DNA of 64,000 nucleotides from Anthoceros angustus (Eukaryota > Plantae > Anthocerotophyta), in contig MU008152.1 of NCBI GenBank assembly GCA_010909165.1, positions 372,001-436,000 of the forward strand. Direction: 5' to 3'. Made by a program: the position numbers and the translations under genes. Shown one piece after another: positions 3,001-54,406 of the stretch (its first letter is position 1; every line of letters starts with the position of its first letter). The notes beneath the pieces were generated by a model. It was not told the origin of the DNA. It searched no databases and saw nothing but the letters and a program-made list of their open reading frames with translations.

Positions 3001-3702
3001 CTGACTATTCACATGACCGTACTAGATACTACCTTACCCGGAGTTTGGCCATATTATGTGCCTGCCGGCCACCATACCAAGTGTCAATTGCAACGGCTAT
3101 GCAAAGATGGTTTGGATTCTCTTCAGCCTTTTCCAGGATATCACCAGGTATGCACCAGGGGAGTCATTCAAGGAAAAAGGACAATCGAGGACAAACACGC
3201 CTCACATCGCGAAAGAGTCTAAAAAGCAAGCGAGCCCTAGAACGCTTACTTCCAACTGTTCGTGTGCCGTGACACGAAGCATCTTGCTCCCATAATGTCT
3301 CTCAATCTGCAAGAAGAGAACGATTAGCTGGAAGGCAACGCTTCAGCAAACTTATTTGAACTCAGAGCTGCCACAAGCAATACGAGTGAGTACCTAGCTG
3401 CGTTATTGCGCCTGCAGGAAACGCATCAGCCGCTAAGCTGATTCCTCTTAATGCTCCCTCACATTGCTGATATACTTACGCCAAATGGAAATCCGTAAGA
3501 TAGTGGTAACCAAACCTAGCACTCTTACAACGTACCAAATCACCGTTTCTGTCAACAAGATCTCGACAGTCCCTGCACACTCGGTTCTATTGTTTTCCTT
3601 GAATACAGCACTGGATTGTCAGCTGCACCCAACTCGAGGCACTACATCCTACACTGACTATGGTACAACACAGGTGTTCGGCAACAGTGCTGCCAGTCAC
3701 GG

Positions 3703-9040
<5,338 letters not shown>

Positions 9041-9822
9041 ATGAGCGGGCTGCGCAAGGACCTCAAAGCCCCACAGTAGAGAGACTCTGTTCGTGTGCGG
9101 TCCGTGTCACACTCACAGCAACCGCGGATCGGACCATCCGCCGACACGCTAGAAGAGGCAGCACCTGAGGGCACCAAGCAGGAGTACGCAATGCAGCTGC
9201 GGCGCTGGCTGTAGAGGCCGACAGGTACATTCCACCAGAGCCACCAACTCCCGCCAACCATGCGATGAGAGCAACGCACATGCAGGTCCTCTGGCAAATT
9301 GCACTCAAAGAAACTGCTTTCCACAGCACAGCAGCCGCAGCAGGCAGCAGGCAGCAAGGCGCCACCTGCAGAGTAGAGCGTCAACTTCTGAGCCACCGGC
9401 AAAGGTGCATTCCAATGCCGCTCCTGGTGTGTGCAACGAGACGAATTCCTTGGGCTGGGGCACTACTGCCAACAAGCTCCCGTCTACACTCTTGCCTCGG
9501 CTTGCACGGGATGAGGGAGTCGGCGCTTGCGGATTTTTCCGACACGAGGCAGCAAGCCGCGCGAGTTTGGCCGTGGGACAGATTCAAAGTGGTAAAGCGA
9601 GGGAGAGCTGTTGCTACGGCACAGCATTCACTTCACTCCACCCCGGTTGCGGTTAACTAGATAGTTAATGCAGGATCAGTCGTTGCTGCTCAGGCTCAGA
9701 ATAAACTCCATTTCTGGCTAAAACGCGATTCATGAATGAAAAGCCCGAAGGTAAGGGACGCGCTGTTCCGTTCACACAGTCGGAGCTTCAATCCGATACC
9801 ATTTTCCATGACCATACGTACT

Positions 9823-12800
9823 TTACACGCGCGAAGGCGAGGGACGCGCTGTCCCGTTCACTGGTGTGATTTTGGGAGGCGGTGGCGATGCGACGCTTGC
9901 ATTCCTCCTGGCCATCAAGGCACGCACAACCGGTCCCAGTTTCTCGCTCGTCTTGATCATCAGAAAGAAGAGCAGGCGGTAAAGGAATGCGTCGATGAAG
10001 AGAATGGCGAGGTTCTCCCACTTGTCTCGGCTCAGAGTGATTTGGTACGACTCCCGCAGCACATCCTCTCCTCGGATGTTGCTACCAAATGTGAGTCCCA
10101 GGAAGTCGTTCTGGTACATGCCCTGCTCGTGCAACGAGAATCATCAGCTGAGCGGTGTGACCCTGTCTCCAGGAAGAAGCAGTTAAGGATCTACATCCAC
10201 CGGACATTTACCTGTAGGGCGTACATGTGGAAGCCGATGTAGGACATGGGGTACCGCCAGAATGGCTTGGGCATGTCATTAGGCAGGCGGAAGAAGCCAG
10301 CCACAAGCAAGTAGATACCCTGCAGCCGGAAGTTTGCTTGTCAGTGGGCTTGTCTGGGCCCAAAGGCACCCACAGTGCAGACAGCTGGGCTTCCTTTGTT
10401 TGCAGCACCAACCTGAATACCAGCGCCTGTGATGATGCCCATGAGGAAATTCGGAACCACGCTTGCCACTGCCATCATGAGGCCCTCCACCACCAGCATG
10501 CACGCAAAGAGGGAGAGGATGAAGTAGCTGAAGTGGCCAAAGCCTGGATGGAGTTGCACCATGGAGTAAACTATAGACCCAGTAGCGAGTGAGATGAGGA
10601 AGAGGAAGGGCATGGAAGACACAGAGTTTGCAATCACAAACGCGGCAACTCCGTAGTGTCCGTTCAGTCTTTCTCGACTGAAAACCTGGCAGTCACAAAA
10701 TTCATGATGTGAGCTCTCCTTGTGCGGGCAGCTGCCTAGGCATGCGTTTGGCAACGTGCGCACTGGACTAGTATTCCAGAAGAGTTGGATCCTTTACCTT
10801 CATGTCCTCTACAAAGGAGGGGAACCCTCCTATTGCCATGAAAGTCAGGAAGCCGGCGATGAATGACATGCATGATGCTCTTGCCTGCATTCCGGAGAGT
10901 ATCTGGTGAGCACATTCCCTTCTTTTCTAGCCTACTGGTACCATACCTAGGTGGAATGAGATCATGGTGATGATGATCAGGCATACCTGAATGGAACCCT
11001 CGGTGACCCCAACTTTGTAGTAAACGGTTCCGATGCAGATGGCCAGCACGATGTAGATGGCAAGACGGAGCCAGTAGTAGCCCATGTCTCTAAACATGTT
11101 CACAAACGATCTTCGGGCGAGTGTGAAGGTCTGCTTGAAGAAGCTGGCGTGACTCCCTTTTGACTCCAAGACTGCGCCATGCTGCAGCACAATCAAATTG
11201 AACCACATGTGGTCATGGCAAGAATGCTGGCTGGAGCAGCTGAAGCATGGAAGGAGCAGGGCCTGGCGTCTGTCATGGTACCATCTGAGAGATCTCGTGG
11301 ACTTTGGCCCTGGCCGACATGGCGAAGTCGGAATCCTGGTATGCATTGACAAGAATCTCCATCCTCATGCTGGTGCTCATGGTGCTCATGGGGTCAGCTT
11401 GCTCGATATCGTCCTAGTACCATCAGCAGTAGAATTACTCACCAAACTGCCTGTAAGTGGAGTGATGTAAGTGGAGTGAACTTGTGAAGGAGATATGGTA
11501 CCATTCTGAGCTTGAAGGATCCTTTGATGGTGGCCGTCACCCTGTCGAAATCCGAGTTGATGGCTCGCAAGAAATGGTCGGATGGGTTGCGCCTGGCGGG
11601 ACAGGGGAAGCCGGCATCGGCAAAGTGCTGCGGCCAACAATTGCAGCGTCAGCTCGCCATCGGCACGAAACTTGCTGTCCAGAAAAGCGTTCTCCAAGGT
11701 TCAGAGCTGGGCGATGGCATACCTGGTGCGCGACACCGGCCTTCCCGAAGTAGACCGTCTGCCCCCCCGACAGAAGGAAGAGATTGTCGAAAAGCTCGAA
11801 CACCTCGCTGCTGGGCTGGTGTATGGAGGCGATGACGGTGCGGCCGTCGCGGGCCAGGTTCCTCAACGTGGTCACCACGAAGAAGGCGGAGGCACTGCGA
11901 CGCCATGGGAGTTGCGAACGTGACTAAAAGGCGGCGACGGCGGCGGCCATCTCCAATCCAGAGAGGCGGAAGGAACGTCATCAACCTACCTGTCGAGCCC
12001 GCTGGTGGGCTCGTCCAGAAACAGCAGGCGAGGCCGAGTCAGGATCTCCAACGCAATGCTCACCCGCCGCTTCTCCCCGCCGCTCAGCCCCCGCATATGC
12101 CAGTTCCCGATGGCCGTGTGCGCCGCGTCCTGCAGCCCCATCTCGTCGATCGTGGTGTGCACCAGCGCCATCTTCTCCGCCCTGGGCATGCTCTCCGGGA
12201 GCCGCAGGCTCGCCGAGTACGTGATCATCTCCAGCACTGTGAGCGTCCCCAGCAGGGTGTCGTCCTGCGTCACGTACGCCTGCAGCCAAGGCAGGGAGAC
12301 CACCACACTCGCCATCACAACCGAAATCACAACAATGTGCAACATCGCCAATGCCCGCGGACGCTTACCGATGCTCCAATCGAGAGTCTCTTCTTCTTCT
12401 TCCCGTTCAGATACATGTCCCCGGACAGCCTGGCGTTGGGAGACAGCCGCCCTGCCACAGCGCCTTCCCATGATCACCCCGATCGACAACAGCCAACAAA
12501 CAGCAAGCATGGTCTCCCCGTATCTCCATACCAGCCAGAGTGTCGAGCAGAGTGGATTTGCCCGAGCCCGAAGGACCCATGATGGCCGTGAAGCTTCCAG
12601 GCTCCGCATACCCCGTGAGCTTGCGCAGCAGAACCTGGGCTGCCTCCTCCCCGGCGCCTGCTGCCATGGGCACAGTGACAGTGACATCATTCCAGGCGAG
12701 GAACGCGCCCCCGCTGCCCACGACCGGGGCGGGGGCCGCATTGCTTCCCCGGCTGTAGCTTCTGAAGAGAGTCTGGCTGAGCGGGCTGAGCTCAGGCTGC

Positions 12801-12826
12801 GGCTGCACCGCCGTCAGCCCGGCCAT
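9823..12826 (-). CDS. ABCG (WBC) half-size ABC transporter, ABCG11/12/15-like, multi-exon
   Basis: Walker [20 protein letters not shown], signature [12 protein letters not shown], Walker [12 protein letters not shown] and [12 protein letters not shown] are present. TM exons include [17 protein letters not shown] and [17 protein letters not shown]. Stop at 9823. The start is uncertain: ATG 12826 is used, but an upstream exon is possible. Confidence 0.9.
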
Positions 12827-13616
12827 GCTCTCCACCTGCTGCGAGACGGGATGGGACGCTGGAGTCGACTCTCAGCCTGGGCTGGGCCGCTGGAGCTGGA
12901 GCTGGAGCTGGGCTTCCGGGACACGCTTGAGGCTGGGCTGGAGCTGGGAGAGAGCTGGATTTTGAAGGCGTGTGCAAGTCCGTGCCACCAACCCGGGCCC
13001 CGCTCGGACGCCATTGATGGCTCTGGCTCCGCGTGGGTAGGTGAAGCCGCGGTCGCGCAGAGGATCAGATTAGGCCTTCAACTCCCGCTGCCCGGACTGC
13101 CGCTTAATCGCACAACTGTCATGAATTCCAGGTCCCAGGACATGGTACTTGCACGCCATCGTAATGTCGACAAGGAAGGTCCGTCACGGAGTCAACCCGC
13201 GCTAACCCCCCACTCCGCACGCCCCTCATCAAAGACTATTAACTCCTCCGCCATGGCAATCCCACCACCATTCCCCCATCATCGCCACCTAATACCCAAA
13301 GAAGCTCTCCATACTTGAAAGCGCACACTCGTGCTTTACCAAGACCATGCGTGCCTCGGGCTTCACATTTCATTTACCTTCTCAAACCATCTGCCAGCGT
13401 CTCACAAGGCCTCTATCGACTTCAATCTGGAAATGCACGCTTGCCGAGCTCGGGATTCACAAACTTCTGCCAGCAGGCCATTCAGAGAGTCCCGTTCGTC
13501 AGACAATTTTTACTGTCTCGCGCAAGGGATTGGGTGCTAAGCTGGGCAATTTGTAGTTCTCGTGTAAAGGGCTTCATGGAATGCCGATGGAAGACGAGTT
13601 TTGCATCCAGCTTTGT

Positions 13617-13672
13617 GGAGCAATTGGGTATGGTACGCTGTCGTGGAGCAATTGGATATGGTACGCTGTCGT
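13617..13672. repeat. 28-bp tandem duplication (2 copies, 1 mismatch) upstream of the ABCG gene
   Basis: ggagcaattgg(g/a)tatggtacgctgtcgt occurs at 13617-13644 and 13645-13672. Confidence 0.9.
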
Positions 13673-15359
13673 GGGTACAGTTGACGGTCGCCATCTGGGC
13701 AGGTGGGTAGCTTGGCATGCAGACGAAACGCGCCAAATTCAGTGGGCCTCTTCATGGGATGGGCAACATCTCTTTTATCCCTCCGTGTGAAGGGCACACC
13801 AGTTCTAGCTGGTGTTGCCCACAGTCCTCAACAATGTGACCTTCGTGAATGCGCGGATTTGGTAGTTACGGAATCGCGATTCGCGACCCTCCGACGCTAA
13901 GAGCTCACTGATCAGGTCGTGTGGCCTACATTCAATCGTCAGTCCTTCTCTTGAGACTGTAGCCGCTCTGCCTAAGCTCGTAAATGCAGGGCACCCCTCC
14001 CTGTCCAGGATGTACCTCCATCGCTCCACAGCTTGATGTGCTGTAAAACTGGTTTTTTAGCGAATTTAATTTTTATTTATGCTGTTCCCTAATATGTACA
14101 CAAAAGCCAAGATTCTCGGGGCAAGCGGGCAAGCGAGAGGGAGAGGATTACCCTACCTAACCCCACAACGCTGAAAGGGTTTCCCCTTGTTTTGAGCTAA
14201 TTATTAGTTTTCAATGAGACGTAATTAAGAAAAAAATCCGGGGACCCTATTCAGAACTCCTCGATTACGAGTGCCTCTTGCTCTACCGACTCATGTGTTC
14301 TGGAAAAACGTGAGCCTCATTCCTTCCCGTCACTTTTTTCAATGTCTCTTTGCGAACTTCATAGCCATGTCCGCATGGAAAAGCATCTATGCTCGATGTG
14401 GTCGCCTCCCAATAACCCACGTTGAGCAAACATTATCACCAAAACACCACAGCACAAAGCACTTGGTCACCAAGTTTGGAACATGAGAGACTTTCATAGC
14501 GGCCGCAATAAATTTTGAAACAAGGAACCACACCTCCATAGCTATGAAGCGGTAGGCCAAACTATCTACAAAAAGTCTCCAAAATTGGGCTGCTTCTACT
14601 CGCTTAGGCCAACTGCTTGACGACGCTACCGGCCTCAAGCTTGGATATTCAAAGAATATGGTGTAGATTGCCATGTCATAGTGAGGCGGCCACTGGACCT
14701 CGCATTGGCGGAGGTCATGGAGAGGGAGCTCAGTGTGAGCGCCTCAAATTCACTAGAGCCATAGGTAGATGCAGTGGTGCTTGCGCGCAGCCACAGGCTC
14801 GATCGTGGCCTTCTTGGTCCTGTGCTGGCGCTACCAAGCATGGACCCTGTCCCAGAGACTAGCCTGCTACCGCATTATGGCTATGACTGCCTCGCAATGT
14901 CTTCTTAAAATTGGTGATATTTGATCTCCCCGAATATGTTTGTGGTAGCAAAATTGAAATTTCGCTAAAAACAAAAAGTATGTATGTAGTAGTCGATTTT
15001 TCACCTCAATAAAAACCTCTCTACGTAGTAGTCAGTATATGTAACTACCTACTGCACTACAGAAACGTCGAATGTTTTAAAGCACATTAATGTGTTAGTT
15101 GCTGAAGAGGTTATCCCCGGCTGCGCACCGGTTCTGTTGTTTATTATCCCTAGAATGTTGAATCCACTCATATTGAGTCGTTCAACTCACTTTTTGGGCT
15201 CTTGAATTTCTTTTAAACGCAGGTTCCACTTGGAACCTTTGAGCGATGTCTGTAGATGGGGTGGGCAGCGCGTTAGATTTTACAATACAAAAAACAGACC
15301 CCCATAGGCACATCCAGACCACATGTTACTCTTTGTTGAGCTAAATTCTCTTGTGGGTA

Positions 15360-15385
15360 AACAAGGTCTCCTAAGACCTGGAGAC
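15360..15385 (+). repeat. Left 26-bp terminal inverted repeat
   Basis: Perfect inverted match to 18396-18421; identity breaks off on both sides. Confidence 0.9.
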
Positions 15386-16567
15386 GGCTCCTCGTCTTTG
15401 GTTTTGAGGGGGTGAAATTTGGGGCTTGGAAACAAAAAAGCCTGAATTTCATAATTTGCAGAATTTAAAAAAAAAATTGCATGATAAAGATGTGACTTTA
15501 AGAATGAAACCATGCATTTCAATGGTTTTAAGGTAATAAGACCTTCACATGGTCTACACTCCTCCAAGTTCTCATGAATCAACTGCCAATTCTTTAAGAC
15601 AGATACGTGCAATTTTTAGGCCGCACAAAATGGATATTAAAAAAAGGTCCACAAAATGAGTTTAAGGGTCCGTAAACTGACCAGAAAAAAGGAGCGACGC
15701 ACATTGTAATGTACTTGTATGACCCCGGACATCTGGTGAATGTGCGAATGGTATGAATCCGTTAGCTGGTGCAGGCCCGAGGTTGCAATGCCTTGGAAAT
15801 TGGATGAAATTTTCGAATTTCATACCGGCTGGCCTTTCGGACACACTATGCGGAAATCTATTTACAATTGCGGGTTCAATGCGATCATTCCACGCATCGT
15901 GACATGGCACACATCTGTATGGTTACATGCATATGATGAATGCATTCATCATGTCCGTGACTAATCACCCACGCGGCGAAGCCTTTCCACTACAACAGAC
16001 CCCGTGTGGCCGTGTTCAAACCGATTTTCTTATAGCAATGCATTTCGCTCTTCGTTCGTCTGGTATAAGCGCCCAGCATGGTTGATATGCGATTTGCAAT
16101 TCCGATAAGGTCTCGACCATGACACTTCACGCACATGGACGAGGCTCGGAATCGGGTGCCACTACCGGCCTTCCCTACGCCTCAGTCTCGAAGGGGGGGC
16201 CAACTCATGTACGCCAATGCGTCGGCCCATGACCGCAAAGGCTCGGAATGCCGATTGAGGCTGCGTAATCCCTTTCCGGTGTTCGATTGAAGGATATGCA
16301 TGACGATGCTCATCGATGCAATGTTATTTAGGTGCCGACCATGTTTGTACCATGCCTGAGCAGCCATCGTGAACGAAAAATGGTACTGCAAGCCGAGCTT
16401 AGAACAACGGGACACCGTGGACACCGAACAGCAGCCTTTATCACCGGCTGTCCGGTGTTATGCAAGACTTGGGGCCGCTATCTACATCGCAAGTTGTCTC
16501 ACAATGTTTGGAGTCCAACACAAAAAGCAACGTTAACCAAACTGGTCGTCTGCAGGTTTCCTAGCCC

Positions 16568-17831
16568 TCACACATCTCTCCCAATCCCGGATTCAGATGC
16601 CACGAGTTTTTTTTGGCTGTCCGCCCAGTCGTTGTCTGGAGAGTCAATCAAGCCATCATACTTCTTGGTCGCCGTCTCAAGGGGATGGAACTCTGATCCA
16701 TTAGCCCCCCCCAATGTTGTAGCAAAAGCCTCTTCTCCAGCCATCTCGCCAATGTGCGCTGCGCGTTTCTCACTAACCTCCCCTGCACTTGTCGACGGAT
16801 GTCCTACAACACCAGTCGAAAGTGAATCTGACACGCCTCCAAATGTGCATCGCGTCTTCTTGTCTGCACGCCGCTTCAGACCCACAAAACAACCTCGGCC
16901 ACCTGCGACAGTGTTCACCATGGGCTCTTTGCTGCACGTCTTGGGTGCTGCATACCCGTCAACGTCTCCTACCTCCTCCTCCTCGCTTGGCCAGTTGTCC
17001 ATTGTATTGAGCCGCAAATCCATGAATTGCACTGCTCTAGGATCTATGTCTATCGAAATGACATTGCGGCCAGACTTGAGGGCTGCTACCATACCCAAAC
17101 CAGAGCCTGCGCATCCATCTAGGACCCACTTGCCTTCCATTGTGTACAGCTCAATCAACTTCCTCAACAACCTAATGGGCTTCAGTGCGGAAACCACCAC
17201 ATCATCTGACTTATCATCGTGTTGTAACATAGCTTATGTTCCACAGCCTTCTCAACAAAGCAAGTTGTCAACCCTCTGCCGTCATTCATAACATCGCTTG
17301 ATGCCGAGGAGAAATCAAGGCATAATCCGCTTTAATGAGCCTGCGCCCGTGGTGATGTAATCCCATCATCATCTGACTTATCTGGAGGTGCGTCACATTA
17401 GTTTTGTGCCAGAAGGAGGACGTGACACCACCTTTACATGCTGCAAGCAAGACTTCACGAACCATGGACTTATCATCAGGCGAATGGAATACCACGACTC
17501 GAAAAACCTCAGACGTTGTGATGCCCTGGAATGTCATTATGATCTTCTCAAATTCATCACGAATGAACCGCGTGTCATACTCCCTGGAGTTTGCATCCAA
17601 ATTCAACCCCCGGGGCAAGTCCAACAGAATCATGGCAAACGGACGGGGTTCTAGAAACTAGGCCATCTGCACGATGTTGCCACATACTATACCTACCCTG
17701 CAGGTTCTTTCAGCGTCATCTCTGAAAGTCTTTAACTTTTCGGAACTGGAGGCCTCCAACAATTGTCGCTGCTCATCCAACAATTGTCGCTGCAAGTATG
17801 TTTTCTGGCCTTCTGAGATTGTTGTCGCCAT
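16568..17831 (-). pseudogene. Beta-class N6-adenine/N4-cytosine DNA methyltransferase (N6_N4_Mtase-like), disrupted
   Basis: One frame from ATG 17831 reads ...IVCGNIVQMA*FLEPRPFAMILLDLPRG (motif IV-like; in-frame TAG at 17658-17660). After frameshifts, ORF 16568-17230 reads KPIRLLRKLIELYTMEGKWVLDGCAGSGLGMVAALKSGRNVISIDIDP (motifs X, I, II). Catalytic motif before SAM-binding motif is the beta arrangement. Confidence 0.8.
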
Positions 17832-17936
17832 TGATGTTTTTGTCAGTGTTGTTGCTTTGGGTTGTGTTGTCTTCCGGGTATTTGCTGGTGCTGCTGATGG
17901 TGCTGATGCTCATGCTCATGCTGGTGCCGAAAGGTT

Positions 17937-18395: not shown

Positions 18396-18421
18396 GTCTC
18401 CAGGTCTTAGGAGACCTTGTT
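18396..18421 (-). repeat. Right 26-bp terminal inverted repeat
   Basis: GTCTCCAGGTCTTAGGAGACCTTGTT is the reverse complement of 15360-15385. Confidence 0.9.
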
Positions 18422-19429
18422 GGTACACTAGATGGCTAGCGCATTTCCCACACGGTGGTGGAGAGTGCGCCGGCCGTCCAGCACACTCTCGAGCTCTTTA
18501 AATTTGTTGCTAAATTCATGAGTTCAGTATAAGTTTATGTCTTATACTTAACTCGGCCTGCAAGTGTCTTATGCCTAACATAGCTTCGCCAGAGTGTTTT
18601 TAAGTTCTTTAGTGGTGAGTTCGCATATCGTCTAGTACAATTAATTGATTTATGTTGAGAATGACTAATTGAACTGCGGATGCGCCACCGTCGCACTCCC
18701 TGCCACTCTATGCTGAGTGCGTCGACCGTCTAGCACACCTGTAGGGTTTCCCTCAATGTTTTCATCTGAACCTAAGGCTTCGGAGATGGTGACAACTCAA
18801 GTAGTCTACTGCATGGAGTGTTTGTCTGTGTTTGTCGATAGACTACACCACAATGCATCAATTACAAAATACAACACAAATGTCTGCCTCTCGTTCATGG
18901 CAGGTATGGGTTACCGTCAGCCATTCCAATTGCTATTAGTCTTTTGCTAACATGTATATGTGTATTTAACAATACCCTTGCCAAAAACCTAGCCTACACC
19001 AACAAAACTAATGATATTGGTACCCTTCCAATCTAATTCTTAAATTGGGCGATATTTGATCTGTCATAAAACTACGCCGCATAATCGACGTAGTCCCCAC
19101 AAAGAGAGGGGCCTACACTGGCCAACCGGGCACCTTCAATACAACTTTGGTAAAAATATCCTTCATCCCTTAGATATCCCCCATGACCTAGTGGTCCCGA
19201 ACTTACTGCCAAACAACAAAACCTAATCCATCTCCCTATTTGCAAAGTGGATGTAGAAAAAGCAAGCGGCTTTCGGATTATTTTGCAGTTGCACCAACTA
19301 GGTCTTCCCGGAGATCCTAGGAGATAAAACTATATACCTAGATAGAAGGATGTAATCATATATTCTAATAAGATGGCAATTACACCACCATTGCATTCGC
19401 TTGGAAATATTGGTAGGAAGCATTGGCTT

Positions 19430-20230
19430 GTAACTCTAGCCGAGGTGGGCGATGTTGTCACGGAGCCGACTGAGGCGACGAGCGCGGGGAGGCCATGCCA
19501 AGGTGGCGGTGCCGGAACACAGCAGAGAAAGGCAACCGTCTTGACCACCTGTCTTATGCTGTAACTCAGAAAACACGGCAATGGTTATGTACCGTTGTGC
19601 CTGGATCTCAGTGTCGCTACACGCGGTGACGGGGAGACCTAGAAGTATCTCTAGCTTAACGATATAGAGATATGTGTTCAGCCATCTAACTATAGCTTGG
19701 GGGATGGTCCTGGTCCCATCGTTGCAAGCATATAGGATAGAAAGGTGCCCCACATCTGGAACTGTGAGCAACTTACAAAGGCTTTGGGTGTTTTGGTGCA
19801 AACAAAATATCTCGTTTCTCATTCTTTACTTTGTACAGTCCTCAAGGATTTTTCCAGGTTCGTCAAGGCCTATACTTTCCACTCTCGCAAGAATGGGGTT
19901 GGTCTCCCACTTTCTTATATTATGGCTTTTTTCAGGCAACGGGTGTCCATCGCCTTGTAGAGGGCGTTGGCGAATGCAGTGTACAAGATGCGGCAAGCGT
20001 AGGGGATGCGGAATCTTTGGCCCTGGTGGTGGGTAGGCCTTTTCATAAACATGAAATTTTCGAAGATGTATGTAATTTCAAGGTGAGCCATGGCAGGGGC
20101 TAGTCCCCTTGGTCGGGTGCCCTCTCGAGGGTTGCTCCCCTTTCTCGGAGGTAAATTTATGATATTTTTTAACATAAAATCTCCACGTTCTGTTCATTTT
20201 AATGGTCTTGGGAAGTCAAGTTCGGTGAAG
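19430..20230 (-). mobile_element. Degenerate LINE reverse transcriptase fragment
   Basis: Minus strand shows eroded RT motifs in the expected order: cgaccaaggggactagcccct (RQGDPLAP with indels), RILYTAFANA (resembles L-x-x-x-FADD), and later ILLGLPV (resembles YLGxP). Stops and frameshifts throughout. Confidence 0.45.
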
Positions 20231-20568
20231 CGAGGAGAAGTTAGAGTGGAAGACGAATGAGGGGCTGCCACGCAGGCAAGAATGAGTTTGAGGCCGGACG
20301 CGGCCCCCTTCTTGCTCCGGTTGGGTTGGGGTTTGCACCATCTGGCGATTCGATATCATCATGATGCGCGAATCGCGATGAATGTCGTTGGGGTTTTCAG
20401 GGTTTGAATGCGGGCGCGCAAGCTAGGGAATGCATGGGCAGGACGCTTCGGATGCTGCTGGGAGCACCGGATTCGGAACGGCCGGCCGCGATACAGTCGG
20501 GACGGATGTGATTGCGGCCGCGCCGGGTGGATGCTGCTAGTCCGGCCACCACTTGCTGATTTGGGAGA

Positions 20569-23483
20569 ATGATGCTTGGCCAGCAGAAGCGCGCGCTGGA
20601 TGGGGCTGCCGATGCCCAGGAGGAGCAGCCTTCCAAGTACCGCAAGCCCAGCGATGATGTCAAGCCCCACGGCGATGGCCCCGCGGAGCCCGCCAATGCT
20701 TGGTCGCAGGAAACCCCTGTCAGCCGCCCGACGGCGTCCGCGGCTGGGTTCGGCCGCAGGCCGGTGGCGGTGGCGGCGGCGGCGGCGGGGGCGGGTGATG
20801 GCCATCCGCACGGGGAGCTGGCGGAGGGGAGCAAGAACGGGCGACGGAGTGAGCCGATTGGACCCGGCGATGGTTCCGCGTTTCTTTCTGACCTAAGCGG
20901 TGCTGGCTCAGGTGATTCGGGGTCGGCATTGCTCGACTCCAAGTTCGCAACTCCGGTTTCGCACGCCGGAAGGGATGAGCTTGGCGATGGTGGAAGGAAG
21001 GAAAGGGCGGGCTCGGGCTCGGGCTCGGGTTCGGCTGCTGGTGCAGCTCGGTCTGCGCGGGGATCGGGTCCATCTGGGTCCAGCGGGCATCGGAATTCGC
21101 GCAGCAGGCAAGGCAGCGAGGAGGTGGAGGCCGATCAGGCCGTGTGCCGAGAGACTGTGGAGAAGGAGTTGGAGGCGGATCAGGCCGTGTTTTTGGAGAC
21201 TGTGAAGAAGGAGTTGGAGGCCAAGCGGTCGAAGCGCCTCAGGCCTTTGCCCGTCGTGGTGGCGGGGAAGGTGGTGGATCTATACAACTTCAATGTCAAG
21301 GTGCGGGAACTGGGGGGCTATTGCAAGGTCAGTGCCGACTCACTGTGGGGGAATGTAGCGGAGGAGCTGGGGCTGGACAGGGTGTGTGGGCCCGCCGTTA
21401 AGTTGGTTTATTTCAAGTATTTGCGGAAGCTGGAGAGTAGAAAGTCGGCGGCACCTGGGGCGAGGATTGGGCCTGCACTGTCGCAGCACCTTGCCGTTCC
21501 GGGCGGGGAGTTGAGCAATGGGAAGCGGGAAGCCAAGGCGGTGGAACAGTCTGGGGACAGTGAGTCGTCCAAGGAAGAGGCTGAGGAAGGTGGAGCGAAA
21601 GGTGAGGGCGGGGGCCTGCGAGAACAGCGACCCTGGTTGCCTGATGTGCGTGAGGGGAATCCGGCCTGGTCTGCGTCTGGCAGTCTCAGTCGAAGCGGTT
21701 CAGAGGGAGCGGGGATTCTGTTTGCGGACGGGGCCAACGAGGAGGGTGATGGTAGAGGAGGGCAGGGGCAGAGAAGGTTTGACACGTTGGCCCATATGCT
21801 GCAGTGGATCAGACGACTGGCCGTCGATCCGAATGACCCGTCAAAGGGGCAGGGTGAGGCGGGGTCGGGTCAGGATGCGGAGTGGGTCCGAGAGTGCCTG
21901 GCAACGGCGCAAAGAGTTCGTGGGTTCTTGTGGAGGAAAAGAGATGAGCCGAAAGCGAGGAACGGTGGTGGTGATGGATTTCATAGCCAGGTAGAGAACC
22001 ATAAGTATATCACTCGTCTGATGCTGGTAGCAAGTGACAGTAGTGTAGCGTGTAGTACTTCTGGTTTCTTTGTTCTGATTCGCGTACACTGCAGAACAAG
22101 CAGACTTCGCGAGGTTATTACGAGGAACCAGCCCAACCAGATATGCAGGCTCTCGACAAGTTGAGATCTACTAAGGAGCGGATAATACACTATGGGTTGC
22201 AACCTCCTCAAAGTAGTCAGAGGCCTGCCTCTAGCACCCTCGGACATCATAACAACAACCGGCGGTCGTGCTCACCACCTCCTGTGTTTTACATTGGAAG
22301 TGGGGATGAGCGGAAGGATGTAAAGATGGGGCACCTTCATCAAGCGGAAGTACCCGAGTGGAATCCTCGTTCCATCCCTCCAATCGTATCTGCTGCCGAC
22401 GGGTCCCTTGTGGAAGGTTATGCATTCACTGAGGAAGGAGAGGACGATGTGCGGAGGTGGTTTGGAACTCGAGTTTGGCCACGCTTGGGTTTTGATAGCG
22501 TTGTAAATAAACACAGGGTAGGGGCAGGTAGGTCAGACGTTTGTTCTTGCGAGGAAGTGGAGTCCGTTGAATGTGTCAGACTGCATGTGCACGAGGAGAA
22601 GGAAAAATTGAAAGCGGAGCTGGGCAGTGCATTTGACGATTGGAAGTTTCAGGATATGGGCGAAAGCGTGGCTGATCAGTGGACAAACGAAGAGCAGCAT
22701 GCTTTCACAGCTCTTGTTAAAATGAACCCTGCAATATTGGGCAAGAATTTCTGGGATCAACTGCCTGTGGCTTTTCCCAACAGAAGCATGAAAGAGCTAG
22801 TTAGTTTCTACTTCAATGTGTTTGTGTTGAGGAGACGAGCTATTCAGAACAGGCTTCTCGAAGAAAAACTGGACAGTGATGATGATGACAAGGAACTCCC
22901 AGTTACTGATTCTGAATACACCGACGAGTCCGACAGTGGGGAGGACGACGAGGAGGAGGTGGAAGACACTACAGGGGAAGATGACGCGGAGATTACAGCA
23001 GGAAGTCCAGTTTTAAAGGGCAATTCCCCTAGACACCCGCATTTTACTGAACTGGAAGCAAGTCTCAACTACAGCGCTAGCAAAATTGAAGCTGAGGGTT
23101 TGGATGCAGTTCTGGGACTCCCTCCCACAGTAGCGTCAAGGCTCGATGATGCGGAGAGTCAAATGTTACGGTTGGGTCAGAGGAACCTCAGGGAAACGGC
23201 GCATTTAGGAGCTGACTGGGAACACGAGCTTCATGGTAGTGAGAAGCATGATATGGAGGGAGTCACTTCGATTGCCGATGATGCTCTGCAGCAAGTTCAA
23301 GGATGGGAAGTTCTTCACTGGGATGAGACTGACCATGACTTTGCCAAGTTGAATTCAAAGCAGGAGGAGAACGTCCGCGAAGACGATTCACAACCGTTTC
23401 AGGTTCTACGAGGTTGCAAGCAAGAGGAAGGTTCGGCGCAAGTGCCACCCATTCCTTGCAAATCAGAACGAAATGATGTGTGA
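20569..23483 (+). CDS. ARID + ELM2/SANT-like chromatin protein (plant ARID1/ARID2-like), at least 2 exons
   Basis: ARID domain PLPVVVAGKVVDLYNFNVKVRELGGYCKV...WGNVAEELG...LKLVYFKYLRKLE. Intron 21991-22148 is GT-AG, phase 0. Exon 2 has IGSGD...HQAEVPEW (ELM2-like) and WTNEEQHAF...FWDQLPVAFPNRSMKELVSFYFNVF (SANT-like). Confidence 0.85.
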
Positions 23484-26400
23484 CAGGGTGAGGAGCACTT
23501 CCGGAATGGCAGAGACGTCGAGAGTTAACGGTACCCAAGACCTGTCATGTACTTGGTCCACTCTCATGCAGGGAATACTGTGGCCTCCGCTTTCACGCTG
23601 GAGACTGGTGTCTGTTGGCAAGAGAGAACAACATCTGGCTGTCGTGTCTTCACGGAAGACGTGCCTTGGTAGTAGTAGTGTCGGAGCAGGTAGACATGCG
23701 GTATATATTCCAGATGCCTCGGTAAACAAAGAAACTTGAAGGTAGCCAGTCCTGGCCTCAGCGTTTGCGAAGGGGTAAGGCAATAGCTACAGATTTAGAT
23801 TTGGCAACGTTGGAACCCGCGCAAGATTAACTTCATGCCTCTGGTGTCAGGCCATTTGATCTTTACATAGTCCGCTTCTAGGGTAAGCGCTGGTGCAAGT
23901 GGCCATGATACGCCAACAGTTGGGCACGTCATATCTATCTGCCCCTTCCTGGAGCCTGGATTTGGCTATGCAGGTGGTGTGAAAGCCCCGCTCCCCGGAG
24001 AAGCATACTTTTCTCACTGTGTGTCGGAGGTCCTGTTGTTTGTGGATAGGTACAATGGACCCACGTCGAAGGGGTGGAAGCCCAGTCGGTGTCATCGCCA
24101 TCGCGCCCAGTGGCTTCGAACAAGAAGGACAGAGAAGCCACTTCACTATGTGTATGCTTGCCTTGCCGGAGACTGGAGAGGATAGACTTCACAGCAATCA
24201 TATCTTTCTTGTAGGCTACCGGGGACAACAAGCTGCCCTTATTAGCTTGGCACGTGTCTTACTGACCCGCTCAATCAAACATTGTTGCCCTCGCCGGGGG
24301 CCAAAGACACTGTCGGCAACTACATAATATTAAAACTTGTCCTTTCCAGAGCGTCACCCACTGGGATAAATTACCAACCGATCTTCTGACTACCTGTGCC
24401 CTACGCAGGGCCAGAAAGGGAGAGAAAGCTTTTATAAATATAAGTTAAGCCTCTTATTCTGTTAAAAATTAGATATTTAAGCTGCTCCCATGGATGGTAA
24501 AGAATAGGATAGGGCATGTGCCATTTTTGGGACTTTTAAACTTTTCACCTTTTTAAGTATGTAAAGAATATTTTTCTTTCGAGAAGGACTGTAAATTTAA
24601 CTTGACTCATTAGTATGTGCATCATGGTGTGTATGGGCATATAAAGCATAGATTTCTTGGTGTTAGGTACTCAAGGGATTATGGTTGGTCCTAGTATTGT
24701 ATGGGTATATTTATTTATATCCGAAGCCAGTGGCAAAGTTAATGTCAGACTTTTATCTTAATGATTGCTACATTTTCAGATTTGAGTATACATATTTTCA
24801 ATTGGCTCTAACCCGAGAATAGAAAAATCCAAGGATTATCGATCCAGATATTTCATAACAAGAGAAAGGAATGTCATAGATTTTGGAGGCATTGATGTTA
24901 ACACTATCTCTAAAGACACTCCACTTTGCATACCTCCGAAGTTGACTAAAGTTATCACTTACAAGTGATAGCTGATTACTTAGAAGACCTGAGAGAAAGA
25001 ATGTCAAAGATTTTGCAGGCATTAATGTATACACATCACAAATTACATACCATTTTGTGTACTCTCTAGAGTTCAGCGCGAATGATGAACTTCAATATAG
25101 CATTTGTGATATACCTAATGGTTAGGTGAAGACTCATCTAAACTCCAATATGCCGGTTACATAATATCTACTCTTTTTGATTCTTAATGCATTTTAATTT
25201 TATTATTTATTAAATTACATAATAATAAAATATTTAATTTCTTGGTCTCCAGTTGTTAAGGTTCTCAACTCTAAAATATTTATGGTAAGTAAATATATGT
25301 GTAGAATTGTGTGTGGGGGCTGGTGCAGTGTGCAGAAATTGTGGTGTAGGCTGCTCCCGAACGTGAGAAGAGTCGGTATCTGTCATGTCCTGATTGGACA
25401 TGAAAAGATAGTTTACGGAAAAGTAACTTGACGCTTTGAAATATTGTTGGATGGCTAAAATAAGGAGCATAATCGTGGCTGGTGGGTGCGTGTTTGGGTT
25501 TGGGTGAGGCCCCGCAAGCAAAGAGGAGTCGACAAGAGAAACGGTTTTGGAGAGTGCGTGCCGTCACAGGTCACAGAAGCGAACGTGCGAGCGTGTGTGA
25601 TGGATTACCGCGACTTCATAAGCAGTGAGTGAGGGATCATGGTCCCTGGTTGGGCTCCGCAGATGCGCCGGCATATAACCCTCCACGATGCACCATCGCA
25701 CACTCGCAACAGCAACAAACAACAAAACCCCAAGCAGCCGAACAGGCCAGCGGCCAGCGGCCAGCAGCCAGCCGAGGCTTGGCCCCACGCCACAGCCAGA
25801 TTCGGATAATCTTCCTCCCCCCGCCTCCGCCAACAAGGAGACGGAGCTTCTGAGCATGCTATGAGGCGGCTGGGGCTGGGGCTGGGGCTGGGGCTTCGGC
25901 TGCGGCTGCGGCTGCGGCGCCAACCCTAAAATCCCACACCAACAACTTGCTTTGTCCGGCCACGACAATCAGGACAAAGGACGCCCGACGCCCTTGAACA
26001 CCACCGTTTATGCCGTAAGTGATTCCCGGCCCAAAGCCCGGGAATCATGAATTTGTAGGTATATCAGCGCGCGCCCAAGCCACGCATATTCTTCCTCTGG
26101 CGCTGCACAGTAAAAAGGCGGGGGGGAAGGAGGTGGGGGGCATAATCTACCCGGTTATTATGTACTCATGTGTATGTACACATTAGGGCACGCGGCAGTG
26201 GGTAGAAAGAGAAACTGGGTGTGTGGGTGTAGAGAGAGAGAAAGCGGGCGAGTCCAGGGTCCGAGGCCGGGCGGGCGGGCAGGCGTGCAGCGGCGCGTGA
26301 CAGATTCTCTGGAAGTTGTGCTGGAGTCGTCACTCCACTCCGGGCCTGCGCTGTTGGCTGCTGGCGTGGTGGAAGGAATGCGTTCGATGCCAGCTATTTC

Positions 26401-27015
26401 CAAGCGCTGTTGGAGCCGCGCAGTGTGAAGAGGGCTTGCGCCCGCAAGTGCGTCGTCCACTGTCGTCAGGGGCTGGGCTGGGCTGAGCGGGGCTGGGCTG
26501 CAGCCTGGCGATGGCCCGAGGCCAAAACATCTTCCTTGCTCGAGCACGCGAATGAGGCGGCACTGCCGTGCAGCGCCTCTCCCTGCTCTGCTGCGCTCCG
26601 CTGCGCCGCATCGCGCTTTTCGCCGCCGCTTCTGCCCTAAGCGCTCGTTGCTGCTGCTGCTGCTGCTGCTGCTCCAGCCCAGGCCCAGGCCCAGGCCGGC
26701 CTTTCGCCGTCCCCGCCGCTCTCTGCTGCTGCCGCAGCTCCGCCTCAGCTGCCCGCCCTGCCGCCGACCTTGCTGCCTCTGGGTCCTTCGCTGCGCGGCT
26801 GGCTGCCTGGCTTCGTCTTCCCGGTGAGCTGCGGCTGGAGGTGGCATGGCGGCGCCGGACCCTAGCGGAGGAGCTGAGCTCGATGGCGTCGGCGGGCAGC
26901 AATGTGGTGCATGGCGGCGTGGGCTGCGGCCGGGGCTGGCCACCTGCTGATCTGCCGCAGCTGCTGCGCTTGGCTTCCAGGTGGATGACGCGGAGGAGGA
27001 GGTAGCGGAGGAGAG

Positions 27016-30000
27016 ATGGCGACCGAGAGTCCGGTGAGGATGCTGCCGGGGGCGGGACGGGGATGCGGGGGATCAGGGGCTCAGCGACAGCCTTAGGGCT
27101 GGGGCGCAGGGGGCACGGCCACAATTCCTCGCCCACGCGGGACGGCGTGGCGCAAGAATTGGGGCTGCTGCTGCGGGGGCGCGGGAGGTATGAGAATCTC
27201 ATGATGGGGAGGGACGTGCCGCAGCGGAGCGGGAGCGCGCCGCCCAGCGTCGAGGGGTCTCTGGCGGCTATGGGAGGCTTGTTGTCGCAGCACCCGTCGC
27301 CGGCGGTGCGTCTGGCCAAGCACGGGGGTATGGACGGGCTTGATCTCTTGGACAACGAGCAAGAACTGCGCTCTGACCCTAGCTACCTGGCCTACTACTA
27401 CACCCACATCAATCTCAATCCAAGACTGCCGCCGCCTATCACGTCGTGGGACAATCCGCGCCTTGCTCAACGCTTGTCGTCGGCGGCCGGGGCTCTTGGG
27501 GGTATCGGAGATAAGAGGAAGGGCAGGTCTTTGGATGATACCACCAGCAAGTCGCTTTTTTCGACGCAGCCCTTGTCCACGCACCGGGAGGAGCCCGAGC
27601 ATTTGGAGGATGAGAGTTCCCCCATAGGAAATCTCGTGAGGCAGAGCTCTGCGGATTGGGCTGAGAGAAGGGGGGACGGCCTTGTCGCTCTGTCTAGCAT
27701 TGGTCTGGCCGTTCGACCCAAAAGTTTAGTGGATCTGATCCAGGTGTGTCATTCTTTTCCTTCCTGCAACGGGCCTTCCATGTGCTCCTTCGTCACCTCC
27801 CATTCTTGTGAACCGAGGGAGTTTGTGAGTCTTATCTGGTGGCCTGGGGGCAGCTGGATGGTGAAAGGCCTCCGACCTTGATGACGTGTGCTCGTGTTGT
27901 TGCTCTGATGTGGGTGAGGTGGGACAAACATTGTGGTGGTGAGGTGGTGACGGCATGACGAGTGAGGTTCTTGTCTTGGATTGGGAGCTTGAAACATATT
28001 TGTTGTGGAAGAGGAGGTGCGAGTGGGGTTTTGATGCGCTACTTGTTCGTCTTCTGGATCTCGTCTTAAAATCGCTCTTTGCAGGAAGATTTCCCTCGAA
28101 CACCGTCACCTGTGTATAATCATTCCCGATCTTCCAGCAGAGCAGCCAATGAGGATGGGGTGGATGAACTGCAGCTGACGCATTTGCGAGATGCGGCTGC
28201 CATGGGTGCGGTATCTGTCGCAGATCTAAGTGCAGTGGTAGCGAGTTTGTCTCGCTCGTCAACTCCCAACCCTGGCGGAGTGCAACTGCATGGAGGTTCA
28301 ACCCCAGGTGCCACGTCTACAATGCCGTCTGCACCTATTCCAAGGTTAGCCTCTTCAGATGATACGAATGTATCCGTGAGGTCTGCAAGCCCTGGCAGTG
28401 CTATGATGGCTGCAGTCGGGCTGACTTCAGGTTTGAGCATGTCTGGCTCTGAGTTGCGAAGCGTCTCTCTTGGCACAGCAGCTAGCGCTGGTGCGGCTGA
28501 GCTAGCTGCCGCACTTCAAGGCTTCAACCTGTCGGATGGGCGTGCAGCTGCAGCTGATGAGCATGAGAATCTGCACCAGCACCAACAACAAGAGTTGCAG
28601 CAGGAGCAGGGAGATCAGCAGCAAGTGCGCTCTCAGCAGCAGCAGCAGCAGCAGCAGCAACATCAGCAGCAGCAGAGACAGCAGAGGGCGCAGATTGCCC
28701 AGGCCCACGCTCAGGCCCAAGCACAGGCCCAAGCACAGGCTCAAGCTCATTCTCATGTGATGGCATACTCCCAGGCTTTTCAACAGCAACAGCAGCAGCA
28801 GCAGGCTTATGCTGGTGTGGACCAGAGCTACAGGGGCCAAATGAAGTTTGGTATTCCCAACATGACTCCCCAAGCACAAGGTGCTGGCATTCAGCAAGCT
28901 GGAATGGCTGCACCAGATATGTATGCCACTGCTGCAGCAGCGATGTCGTACATGAATCCGTTCTATCAAAACCTGCACTCAGCAGCTCTTTATGCTCCGC
29001 AGTATGGACTTGGTGGATATCCTATGAATCCAAGCATGATTGCACCAATGTTTGCTGGCTATCCCCCACCAGGCCCACTTGGATTTGAAGGAGCAGCAGC
29101 TGCTGCGGCAGCTGCTGTGGCTGCCAGCATGGGGGTGAGGACAGGGGTTCCTGGTTCGCCAGGTGCGACTGCAGGAGTAGACATGCACCATATGTACAAG
29201 TTCTCACCCCAGCAAGGTCTTTCGGGAGCCGTGCAGGATCCCTACTACCAGTATGTCAGGGTTGCTGACGAGAATGCCCGAGCTGCCGCAGCTCTGAAGG
29301 ATCCCTCTGTCATCAGAGGCTACATGGGTGGAAATCATGTTGATATGATGGATCTTCAAAAGAACCAACTTGGTCCGATGCTTGGCTATTCTCCTGATCA
29401 GAAGGGCCAATATCAAAGAAGCGGGGCAATTGGTGTCCCTATCGCCAGTAAAAGTGGTTCAGTGAGTCCAGCATATTATGGTAGTCCCCCAGGAGTTGGG
29501 CTAGTCATGCCGTACCCAAATTCACCGTTGGCAAGTCCAGTACTGCCGGGTTCGCCTGTTGCAGCAGGTACCGTTCGAAGGGATGACAGGGCAATGCGCC
29601 TTGCAGGTAGTACGAGCAGGAATGCATCTACTGTGTCTAGCTATACAGGCTGGCAGCCTCAAAGAGGCACTGAAACGGGAGATGAGATCCGGGGATCTTC
29701 TTTGCTAGAAGAGTTCAAGAACAGCAAAACCCGTCGATTTGAGCTCTCAGACATTGCAGGGCATGTCAGTGAGTTCAGGTACTACATTCCTCTTCGTCTT
29801 TGTTTCATTAGGGGTTTCTTTGCAGAGCTTTGCAATCAGCCGCATTGATTGTTGTTTGGTTTTGTTTTCAGCGCTGACCAGCATGGGAGCAGATTTATTC
29901 AACAAAAGTTAGAAACTGCAAGTCCTGAGGAAAAGGCTATGGTATTCCAGGAAGTTTTACCAAGGGCTGTGCCTCTCATGACTGATGTCTTTGGAAACTA

Positions 30001-49755: not shown

Positions 49756-50192
49756 TCGAGGCGATGTGTAAAAGTGTGACGCGGCGAGACCTCACCCTTC
49801 AGGATGGGAGTCGCTGGTTTCACGTCGTACCCCAAGCTGTCGTCACATCAAAATGCGTAGTACATCAAGTCCCCCCTTGCGACGGTGTGTGCAGAGAGTA
49901 TGTAGGTAGTCCTTTCCGATGGAGATGCCAGACGCGAATTCGAATGTATGCAAAACTGGGCCTCTTAGAGCCCTAGGCCCAGCACGTGCTCCTGGCAGCA
50001 TGGCTTTCTGGAGCGATGCAATTGAGTCACGAACACAGCAACAGCATCCCTGGTGGGCACAGGTTCTGTGTACCCAAGTCGCTCGGAAGGGTTCCCGCTC
50101 AGCCGACTCAAGGATCCAACCGCTGGGAACAAACGATGGCTCAACGGGGAGCAGTCAAAGTCTGCTGAGATAACACCAACACGAGCTCCCAT

Positions 50193-53828: not shown

Positions 53829-54406
53829 TGGCATGGAAGATCTCGTGTGTGGGCACAGCCGATATCTTCGGCCTAAGCCTAGCAGTCGGGTTGGAAAAGG
53901 TGAGCAGGAAGGAAATTGTCCGAGAAAGGACCATGTAGATGTGTTTGTAGACTCCGATCTCGCGTGTACTATTCGCACTGCATGCTTTTCACAGACGTTA
54001 AAAACCTCAGCAAGTAGCTAGACAGATCTTCTCATTTGATGCCATTGTAGTCGCAGCGTTGATCAGCTGGACCCGACATACGCTTGCTGTGAGAGGTAAT
54101 AATCAAAACCGTTGCGAGGGTTTTGCGCATTCTCCTGTAGTTTGATCTCTGCGTCCAGTGCCGAATTGCAACCACAGGCCTTGCAGATGACTTGTGATTG
54201 GTCGTGGCCAGATCCATGGCTCACAGGTTGTACTCACCTCTGTGCCTCTTGCACTATCAGGTTTACAACGTGCTCCTGCATGCGATGGCTGTCAGGAGGG
54301 TAACGGGAATTGTTGGAAGAGCCTCCGCTCAGTCAACTTCAAGGATCGGAAACAGGGAGGCCTCGAGGTCCAGCACCTTGGATAGAAAGCTAGCTCCGCC
54401 AAACCC

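Follow-up and report, generated by a model that had tools for sequence, protein, structure and literature searches.

A decayed fragment of a probably element-borne DNA amino-methyltransferase gene in a gene spacer of Anthoceros angustus

The stretch analysed here, 64,000 nucleotides of contig MU008152.1 of Anthoceros angustus (assembly GCA_010909165.1, positions 372,001 to 436,000; hereafter the window, whose coordinates are used throughout), carries in the spacer between two plant genes the remains of a gene for a prokaryote-type DNA amino-methyltransferase. Land-plant DNA modification is attributed to the MET1/CMT/DRM toolkit, and the sole functionally shown exception, to our knowledge, is the sperm-specific N4-methylcytosine (4mC) enzyme of Marchantia. 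The question raised by this locus is, thus, what kind of gene left these remains and how it came to lie there. The favoured answer, with a probability of about 0.8, is that the relic is a decayed, 5'-truncated fragment of an element-borne beta-class amino-methyltransferase gene that landed in a plant spacer.

The beta-class (PF01555) pseudogene spans positions 16571-17846 on the minus strand and is broken into three pieces. Piece A (17831-17661, 57 amino acids) ends in IVCGNIVQMA, piece B (17657-17289) is read in the same frame and contains ILLDLPRG, and piece C (17230-16571), in another frame, holds KPIRLLRKLIELYT, WVLDGCAGSG and ISIDID. These motifs, listed in a first-pass annotation made from the letters of the window, are all present on the minus strand. 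In terms of domains, the relic begins with a helical N-terminal leader, QRQLLDEQRQLLE, and the G(D/N) motif IVCGNIVQMA (17661-17846), which align to residues 32-90 of the intact relative P0001 and to P0221. The N-terminal catalytic lobe (17395-17657) comprises FLEPRPFAMILLDLPRG with motif IV DLPRG at 17621-17607 (codons of D at 17621-17619 and of R at 17612-17610), VVFHSPDD and FWHKTNV, and is 52% identical to P0001 and P0004. The middle segment (17218-17382) lies in a third frame, as seen from tblastn matches in phase 2 and from translations; it is shorter than in intact relatives, and its end, CFVEKAVEHKLCYNT, corresponds to NVFRE.AVEHKLCY.T of the relatives. The C-terminal lobe, binding S-adenosylmethionine (SAM), and the acidic tail (16571-17209) were delimited by the PF01555 match, the relatives and the family profile. 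They contain a degenerate motif X (AL-KP), motif I DGCAGSG (17119-17099), IDIDP and the conserved tail LP.E.EE(V)G, with 45-61% identity to P0001, P0003 and P0151.

Homology to the family starts at about 17846 and fades at about 16613. On the 5' side it ends beside a (TGCTGA)n-type microsatellite (17883-17927, Tandem Repeats Finder), which marks the truncation point, the partner domain of full-length members being missing upstream. The 21-bp duplication noticed in the first pass is real: it occupies 17755-17796, has an exact 18-nt repeat as its core (17755-17772 and 17776-17793) and is specific to this locus, since relatives carry a single copy. An open reading frame (ORF) of 319 amino acids at 16332-17291 on the plus strand, antisense to the pseudogene, is taken to be a by-product of coding-strand composition.

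Taken by itself, piece C reaches 39.6 bits against PF01555, whose gathering score is 26.7, so that the profile check proposed earlier gave a positive result for this piece. Pieces A and B match no significant family in Pfam or NCBIfam, and their identity was established only through the intact relatives. The profile of the eukaryotic family matches both lobes (E 9e-30 at 17726-17370 and E 2e-40 at 17383-16847), and the intact relatives P0013 and P0218 cover positions 5-218 of the 221 of the PF01555 profile. On the coding strand the motif order is permuted, motif IV preceding motif I, and a column alignment with bacterial-type enzymes agrees with this order. The SAM-binding loop is represented in the window by WVLDGCAGSG and ISIDID, and the clade to which the relic belongs shows no variation at residues D268, G272, G274 and D291/D293.

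The fold was examined on P0001 (446 amino acids) in place of the broken window copy. Its AlphaFold model has a core at residues of about 68-320 with a confidence score (pLDDT) mostly above 90 and a class I Rossmann-like fold, and Foldseek matched it to solved beta-class DNA methyltransferases with a probability of 1.00 and E values from 6e-13 to 3e-9 (TM-score about 0.6-0.75 on the target). The best match was M.BceJIV (E 6e-13), and further matches included M.MboIIA, CcrM, M.RsrI, M1.HpyAVI, rotifer N4CMT and the N4-specific M.PvuII; identity to all of these enzymes is 14-21%, with no special closeness to N4CMT. Bacterial and phage beta-class enzymes of PF01555, both those acting on N6 of adenine (M.BceJIV, CcrM, M.MboIIA, M.RsrI) and M.PvuII, acting on N4 of cytosine, have the same permuted order of GD motif, motif IV, target-recognition insert, motif X (Q)KP and motif I GSG. 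The plant family differs from them at this low identity in being eukaryotic and in two additions, a partner domain at the N-terminus and an acidic tail at the C-terminus. The earlier assignment to the beta class, with motif IV before motif I, is thus borne out by the profile score and by the fold of the intact relative.

The reading frame of the window copy is disabled at several points, called from protein-to-DNA alignments of six relatives that agree with each other. An in-frame TAG at 17660-17658 stands where relatives have E, D or A. The reading frame passes from phase 0 to phase 2 right after FWHKTNV (17383-17394, about 17385-17394) and from phase 2 to phase 1 at 17210-17217 (between 17218 and 17209, from the alignments of five relatives). 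The TAG and the presence of frameshifts had been recognised in the first pass, and the frameshifts number two; a second premature stop, TAA at 17334-17332, lies within the aligned stretch of the middle segment. One codon was lost in the invariant motif PYQKP, leaving AL-KP without Y and Q, the family-invariant N221/V222 are altered, and the N-terminal partner domain is absent as compared with full-length members. The first-pass annotation had seen here the pieces of a complete methyltransferase: both lobes are indeed matched by the family profile, but the gene itself is truncated at its 5' end and lacks the partner domain. The lesions are real mutations and not sequencing noise, since their sites are not homopolymers and the long adjacent plant ORFs (931-1211 amino acids) are unbroken. 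A 16-nt string, GATAAGTCAGATGATG, occurs at both frameshift sites (17198-17213 and 17367-17382, 167 nt apart, extending to 31 nt at 77%), which hints at a possible trace of microhomology-mediated rearrangement. The 167 nt between the two copies were also considered as a simple insertion, which was rejected as their omission fails to restore the frame register.

The copy in the window is, therefore, dead: two stops, two frameshifts, the codon deletion in PYQKP and the 5' truncation leave a non-functional relic. A still functional locus, expressed by stop read-through, programmed frameshifting or splicing round the lesions, might be argued from the persistence of long ORF pieces and from the terminal branch of the window copy in the phylogenetic tree (0.52), which is no longer than those of the intact paralogues. 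This is scarcely credible in view of four independent disabling lesions together with the lost Y and Q and the changed N221/V222, of the position of these lesions inside conserved aligned coding segments that are not plausible introns, and of the missing 5' partner domain. An intron between pieces B and C in particular was rejected, as conserved coding sequence runs across the breaks in three frames.

The search with piece C in a representative library gave 443 matches, of which a small group stood far above the bacterial background. The top matches were eukaryotic and came from Logan sample SRR33208241, Adiantum, Ginkgo, Riccia and sea cucumbers. P0001 aligns to all three pieces with 40-52% identity, and P0221 was added, among the matches listed, by a profile search of a 5.8-billion-protein set. 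More distant relatives are found in Adiantum nelumboides, Ginkgo biloba, Riccia sorocarpa and two sea cucumbers. Some of the eukaryotic relatives contain introns, and the copies number at least six in the Logan sample, at least six in Adiantum and at least four in Riccia. In the tree, the window copy falls within a clade defined by DLPRG (99/99), as sister to five paralogues of the Logan sample; all plant sequences form one group (97/99), separate from the bacterial-type sequences, and the sea-cucumber sequences join weakly (86/80). The tree rows labelled prokaryotic come from ENA or Logan, show an architecture typical of bacteria and bear this label by assumption. On the evidence of sequence, the relic belongs to a plant-wide methyltransferase family, which has intact members in other plants. 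As a separate observation, the sea-cucumber proteins P0014, P0219, P0220 and P0034 (Holothuria leucospilota and Apostichopus japonicus) are annotated as DNA methylase N-4/N-6 domain-containing proteins, and no recognisable D-x-P-Y motif was seen in P0219.

The domain family as a whole is overwhelmingly prokaryotic, which would suit recent bacterial or phage DNA, present either by assembly contamination or by very recent horizontal transfer. The probability of this origin is close to negligible. The segment runs without a break into plant genes on either side and resembles its surroundings in G+C content, its nearest relatives are eukaryotic and in part intron-bearing, and the tree splits the plant clade from the bacterial-type sequences. 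Among the genomes of 185,579 prokaryotic species no close relative was found, the best matches having 32-55% identity over 29-76 residues. The location of the relic in plant nuclear DNA, as proposed in the first pass, is thus upheld, and its neighbours are the ABCG transporter and ARID/Myb genes.

The most unusual feature of the clade is its motif IV. The canonical form (D/N/S)-P-P-(Y/F/W) is found neither in the window nor in four intact paralogues, all of which have D-L-P-R: P0001, P0004, P0005 and P0221 from the Logan sample share LLDLPRGL with the relic. DLPRG retains the D and the second P, and the replacement of the aromatic residue by Arg is the sole departure from the nearest consensus. 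Bacterial-type sequences, including the close bacterial-type relatives, have DPPYG or DLPYG where the window clade has DLPRG, and an Arg at the aromatic position occurs in no bacterial-type sequence of the column alignment. Elsewhere in the family the motif reads DAPYG in Adiantum, DIPHG in Ginkgo, DIPYG and DVPYG in Riccia and DFPYG in the metagenomic P0019. Because intact paralogues carry the same sequence, DLPRG is a conserved derived character of the clade and not a product of decay. The ratio of non-synonymous to synonymous substitution (dN/dS) is 0.15-0.30 among the intact paralogues, with dS near saturation, indicating that these proteins, including their odd motif IV, are maintained by selection.

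The DLPRG clade may have altered or lost catalysis while retaining SAM binding. Deposition of N6-methyladenine (6mA) or 4mC by its members is doubtful, because Arg stands in place of the motif IV aromatic residue. Specificity for N6 or N4 is not readable from a D-x-P-x motif, and the caution of the first-pass annotation on this point was justified. A possible model is provided by the METTL14-type pseudo-methyltransferases, which have EPPL for DPPW (disrupted active-site motifs are noted in PMC4738411) and in which, as in the DLPRG clade, a fold under selection has lost the motif IV aromatic residue; by this analogy, the DLPRG proteins might be non-catalytic or of altered function. METTL14 differs in belonging to the MT-A70 clade and in acting on RNA as a heterodimer partner.

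The genomic context of the intact relatives bears most directly on the origin of the relic. In four independent loci, which are all those with enough context, a DUF7869 gene is divergently adjacent to the intact methyltransferase gene. In the Logan sample (L002), the DUF7869 gene (56-1915, minus) is accompanied by an ORF named 488 (3375-4841, plus), which is followed by the methyltransferase gene (about 5430-6752, plus). In Adiantum (L006), a DUF7869-like gene (37% identity, E 6e-80) is accompanied by a weak 488-like match and then by the methyltransferase gene. The Riccia locus (L011) carries DUF7869 at 10001-14286 (plus) and an annotated 856-amino-acid PF01555 gene at 4531-9180 (minus), and a JGI metagenome locus (L012) carries DUF7869 at 378-2120 (minus) and a 789-amino-acid single-ORF gene at 6015-8384 (plus). 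The DUF7869 proteins are multi-copy, with at least 10 distinct ones in Riccia and others in Ceratopteris and Adiantum, and their clusters contain up to 51 sequences. Cysteine clusters are common to these proteins, as are three conserved acidic blocks (IDGMDQKKT.LPH, LYLQLDNTARENKN and LLVGHTHDDIDQMFS, with the cores IDGMDQ, LDNTARENKN and GHTHDDIDQ), a pattern compatible with a DDE/D-type transposase, which is what they most likely are. Full-length members contain no additional Pfam domains, comparison with PDB sequences gave no match, and no mention of DUF7869 was found in the literature consulted. The C-terminal beta-barrel of one DUF7869 protein, P0152 (L002:56-1915, residues of about 380-475), gave weak Foldseek matches to the BAH domains of DNMT1, ZMET2 and SHL that are not significant (probability 0.96-0.98, E about 0.1); judging from the model, the putative transposase may carry in this barrel a module that reads chromatin.

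The second recurrent companion is the partner domain (Y.YYVLGG.HS...DHN...FIQK). Homology links the C-terminal half of the 488 ORF with the N-terminal domain that precedes the methyltransferase, within one protein, in Adiantum P0012 (E 2e-12) and Ginkgo P0017 (E 2e-10); the Riccia gene and P0019 show the same fusion. Altogether it lies upstream of, or is fused to, the methyltransferase in L001, L002, L007, L011, P0012, P0017 and P0019, and it is part of the gene product in three of the four DUF7869-linked loci and in Ginkgo. The homology of 488 and these fusions indicate that the ancestral product consisted of partner domain, linker and methyltransferase. A nucleic-acid-binding domain is similarly joined to the N-terminus of an amino-methyltransferase in phage and plasmid ParB-methyltransferase fusions and in the methyltransferases of ParB-Tls loci (PMC4738411), whereas the partner domain has one weak library match, to DUF6551 in a single member, and its profile has no match to solved structures in PDB. 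In L007 of the Logan sample, an Ulp1-type Peptidase_C48 gene (11918-12892) and a RecQ-helicase fragment (15394-15961) lie a few kb downstream of a decayed 215-like/488-like/methyltransferase module; Peptidase_C48 is a frequent passenger of plant DNA transposons.

The best delimited unit is that of Riccia sorocarpa (L011:4043-15075, CM100794.1), which is about 11 kb long, contains the two divergent genes and is flanked by two Ion_trans/EF-hand channel genes. Its ends resemble terminal inverted repeats, in that they form an inverted repeat which is perfect over 21 nt and about 31 nt long in all (4043-4075 and 15043-15075). It contains 17 TGTAT-N6-ATACA sites (consensus ACTGTATGCGCGCATACAGT), some of them in arrays with a 25-nt period. 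In Adiantum nelumboides (L006:4449-9944, JAKNSL020001228.1), about 35 palindromes TGTATTCCAGAATACA, in arrays with a period of 29-31 nt, are confined between the divergent DUF7869-like and methyltransferase genes. As half-sites and spacing are identical in Riccia and Adiantum, the palindromes suggest a conserved DNA-binding specificity. Such sites were not found in the Logan loci or L012. Another repeat, CCTTCAAGATGCAA, forms arrays, 18 copies in total, that flank the Adiantum unit on either side (L006:90-1130 and 11931-13833); terminal inverted repeats were rejected for these arrays because every copy is on one strand, and they may represent a satellite or repeats of a different family.

The window itself is tied to these units by a non-coding motif. 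L001, L002 and L004 share an island, GGAGACCAGGAGCC-GTCTCC-N9-GGAGACCTTGTT, 500-730 nt downstream of the methyltransferase stop codon. The same family motif, (GAGCC)GTCTCC-N9-GGAGACCTTGTT, lies downstream of the pseudogene at 15349-15385 on the minus strand, in the orientation seen in these three loci, and an inverted second copy is found upstream of it at 18396-18432 on the plus strand; zero occurrences would be expected by chance. The two copies form a 37-nt inverted repeat with 86% complementarity and a 26-nt exact core, and bracket a unit of 3,084 bp that contains the pseudogene. When the 13.5-20.5 kb region was compared with the whole window, this core and one microsatellite were the only matches, and neither long terminal repeats (LTRs) nor a second copy of the relic were found.

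The element might instead be viral, the DUF7869-methyltransferase pair deriving from an endogenous giant virus, virophage or polinton-like element, so that the relic would record a viral integration and not a cut-and-paste transposon. PF01555 DNA methyltransferases are common in chloroviruses and phages, and L002 and L007 contain multi-gene units of uncharacterised proteins. A viral origin is nevertheless very improbable: none of the loci showed a capsid, packaging ATPase, polymerase or integrase, a scan of 2.9 million viral contigs yielded no relative, and the Riccia unit is only about 11 kb long, with two genes and ends resembling terminal inverted repeats.

A different possibility is that the relic is a former host gene, a domesticated epigenetic writer that was pseudogenised in this lineage only and whose intact orthologues serve their hosts elsewhere. 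Two such enzymes have been described. Bdelloid N4CMT (PDB 8s9m) is likewise a PF01555 beta-class enzyme in a eukaryotic nuclear genome and matches P0001 in structure (E about 1e-10). It is encoded by one domesticated gene of its host and has a C-terminal chromodomain and an SPPY motif, whose change to APPA abolishes activity; its authors report no eukaryotic homologues (PMC8885841). The present family, in contrast, is multi-copy and linked to DUF7869, has D-x-P-(Y/H/R) and no chromodomain, and is 14% identical to N4CMT, no closer than to bacterial enzymes. In Marchantia polymorpha, DN4MT1a and DN4MT1b lie in tandem, are expressed late in spermiogenesis and are needed for the genic 4mC of sperm (bioRxiv 10.1101/2021.02.12.428880). 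They resemble the present family in being of prokaryote type and in occurring in a land plant, and a second liverwort, Riccia, harbours one clade of the family. As described, the DN4MT1 genes differ from it in being genes of the host.

The purifying selection on intact paralogues, the presence of the family in liverwort, fern and gymnosperm and the use of a prokaryote-type N4 methyltransferase in Marchantia sperm are all compatible with a domesticated gene. Against it stand the several copies per genome, the pairing with a multi-copy DUF7869 gene in all four loci with context, and the nature of the window copy, an intergenic truncated fragment beside an element-specific motif; neither an SPPY motif nor a chromodomain was seen in the family. 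A former host gene is, thus, decidedly unlikely. The first-pass annotation had pointed to a captured host gene standing alone, like DN4MT1 or N4CMT; this view has to be given up, since the family lies beside DUF7869 wherever the context is available.

The favoured reading, that of a fragment of an element-borne gene, would imply the following history. The intact gene, encoding partner domain, linker and methyltransferase, would lie head-to-head with the DUF7869 gene, and both together would form a DNA transposon-like unit. A copy of this element, or a deletion derivative, would have inserted between the ABCG transporter and ARID/Myb genes, lost all but its methyltransferase part, and then gained stops, frameshifts and losses of invariant residues. 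In active elements, the partner domain might guide the methyltransferase to mark the DNA of the element, perhaps at the palindrome arrays, and such self-marking could regulate the access of the transposase or counter silencing by the host.

Several points weigh against this reading. In profile and tblastn/tblastx searches, no DUF7869 signal was found in the whole 64-kb window, nor were the partner domain (488) or the other ORFs of the element; the TGTAT-N6-ATACA sites are likewise absent from the window, and its 37-nt inverted repeat has no recognisable target-site duplication. In Riccia, the left flank of the unit is N-masked, so that a target-site duplication is unreadable there. The origin of the relic from an element is, thus, argued from its relatives and from one short shared motif, and the mobility of the unit is presumed for every copy. 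The close relatives, those with DLPRG, all come from the single Logan sample, and their genomic setting was seen on short contigs. The transposase function of DUF7869 is a prediction: the AlphaFold model of P0152 (mean pLDDT 71) gave no significant Foldseek match, which is partly explained by the absence of the first acidic block from the modelled protein, which begins inside this block. As for the partner domain, its GG(G/N)H(S/T) box may recall the DGxHR box of ParB/Srx proteins, and its putative ParB/Srx-like nature is drawn from this box and the single weak DUF6551 match.

Mobile elements with a prokaryote-derived DNA adenine-methyltransferase-like domain of their own have been described among retrotransposons, with which the present units share this concept. 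Dam-type domains are carried by DIRS/LTR retrotransposons, and DAM-LTR elements are reported to be absent from Streptophyta (10.64898/2026.05.21.726589); the methyltransferase domain of DIRS1 is thought to be inactive (PMC4738411). A survey of eukaryotic adenine-methyltransferase clades and the 2026 preprint on Dam-type retrotransposon domains treat other families. The retrotransposon domains differ in belonging to the Dam or PCIF1-like families and not to the PF01555 beta class, and in being part of a polyprotein, whereas here the methyltransferase is a separate gene beside DUF7869. No description of a plant PF01555 element was found in the literature consulted.

A bolder version of the element-borne reading would take the relic as a trace of DNA transposons of a hitherto undescribed class, which would occur in land plants (liverworts, ferns and gymnosperms), possibly with kin in sea cucumbers. 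Their active methyltransferase, fused to a ParB/Srx-like domain, would write 6mA or 4mC on the TGTAT-N6-ATACA arrays of the element, and thereby control transposition or evade host silencing by 5-methylcytosine, and the class would be the source of DN4MT1-like host enzymes. This full scenario is unlikely.

The surroundings of the relic are genuine land-plant nuclear DNA, as judged by the plant genes on both sides. The relic lies in the spacer of about 7 kb that separates the ABCG transporter gene (exons at about 10341-12835, minus) from the ARID/Myb gene (20569-23483), and its G+C content is close to that of the neighbouring DNA. Farther out are the exons of a RUNKEL-type kinase (3703-7735, minus), a Pumilio NABP gene (28079-29848) and three tandem PLS-E pentatricopeptide-repeat (PPR) genes (46960-57313, plus). 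The latter are intron-less, of the PLS class with E motifs, encode 931, 1211 and 968 amino acids and look like probable RNA-editing factors that have multiplied in tandem at this locus; along with the compact genes and a G+C content of about 50%, they suggest a plant lineage rich in RNA editing. The segments 20001-22000 and 26001-28000 have a higher G+C content (0.61-0.63) with a strong positive GC skew of up to 0.28, and coincide with the 5' exon of the ARID gene and the region upstream of the Pumilio gene. Scans of the window for Rfam families and tRNAs gave no match.

The locus in the window is in itself ordinary, and the relic should be annotated as a transposon-derived pseudogene and not as a plant methyltransferase. 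What is of interest is the family behind it: a bacterial-type amino-methyltransferase gene family scattered over the genomes of liverwort, fern and gymnosperm, whose genes ride on units encoding a putative transposase and, in Riccia and Adiantum, bearing arrays of palindromic sites. The conserved replacement of the aromatic residue by Arg in motif IV is a natural experiment on the role of this residue. If any of the enzymes are active, plant methylomes would contain 6mA or 4mC signals of their making, domestication by the host would have a plausible reservoir in them, and the unit would be a DNA transposon-like one with its own epigenetic writer, as in the literature found was described only for retrotransposons.

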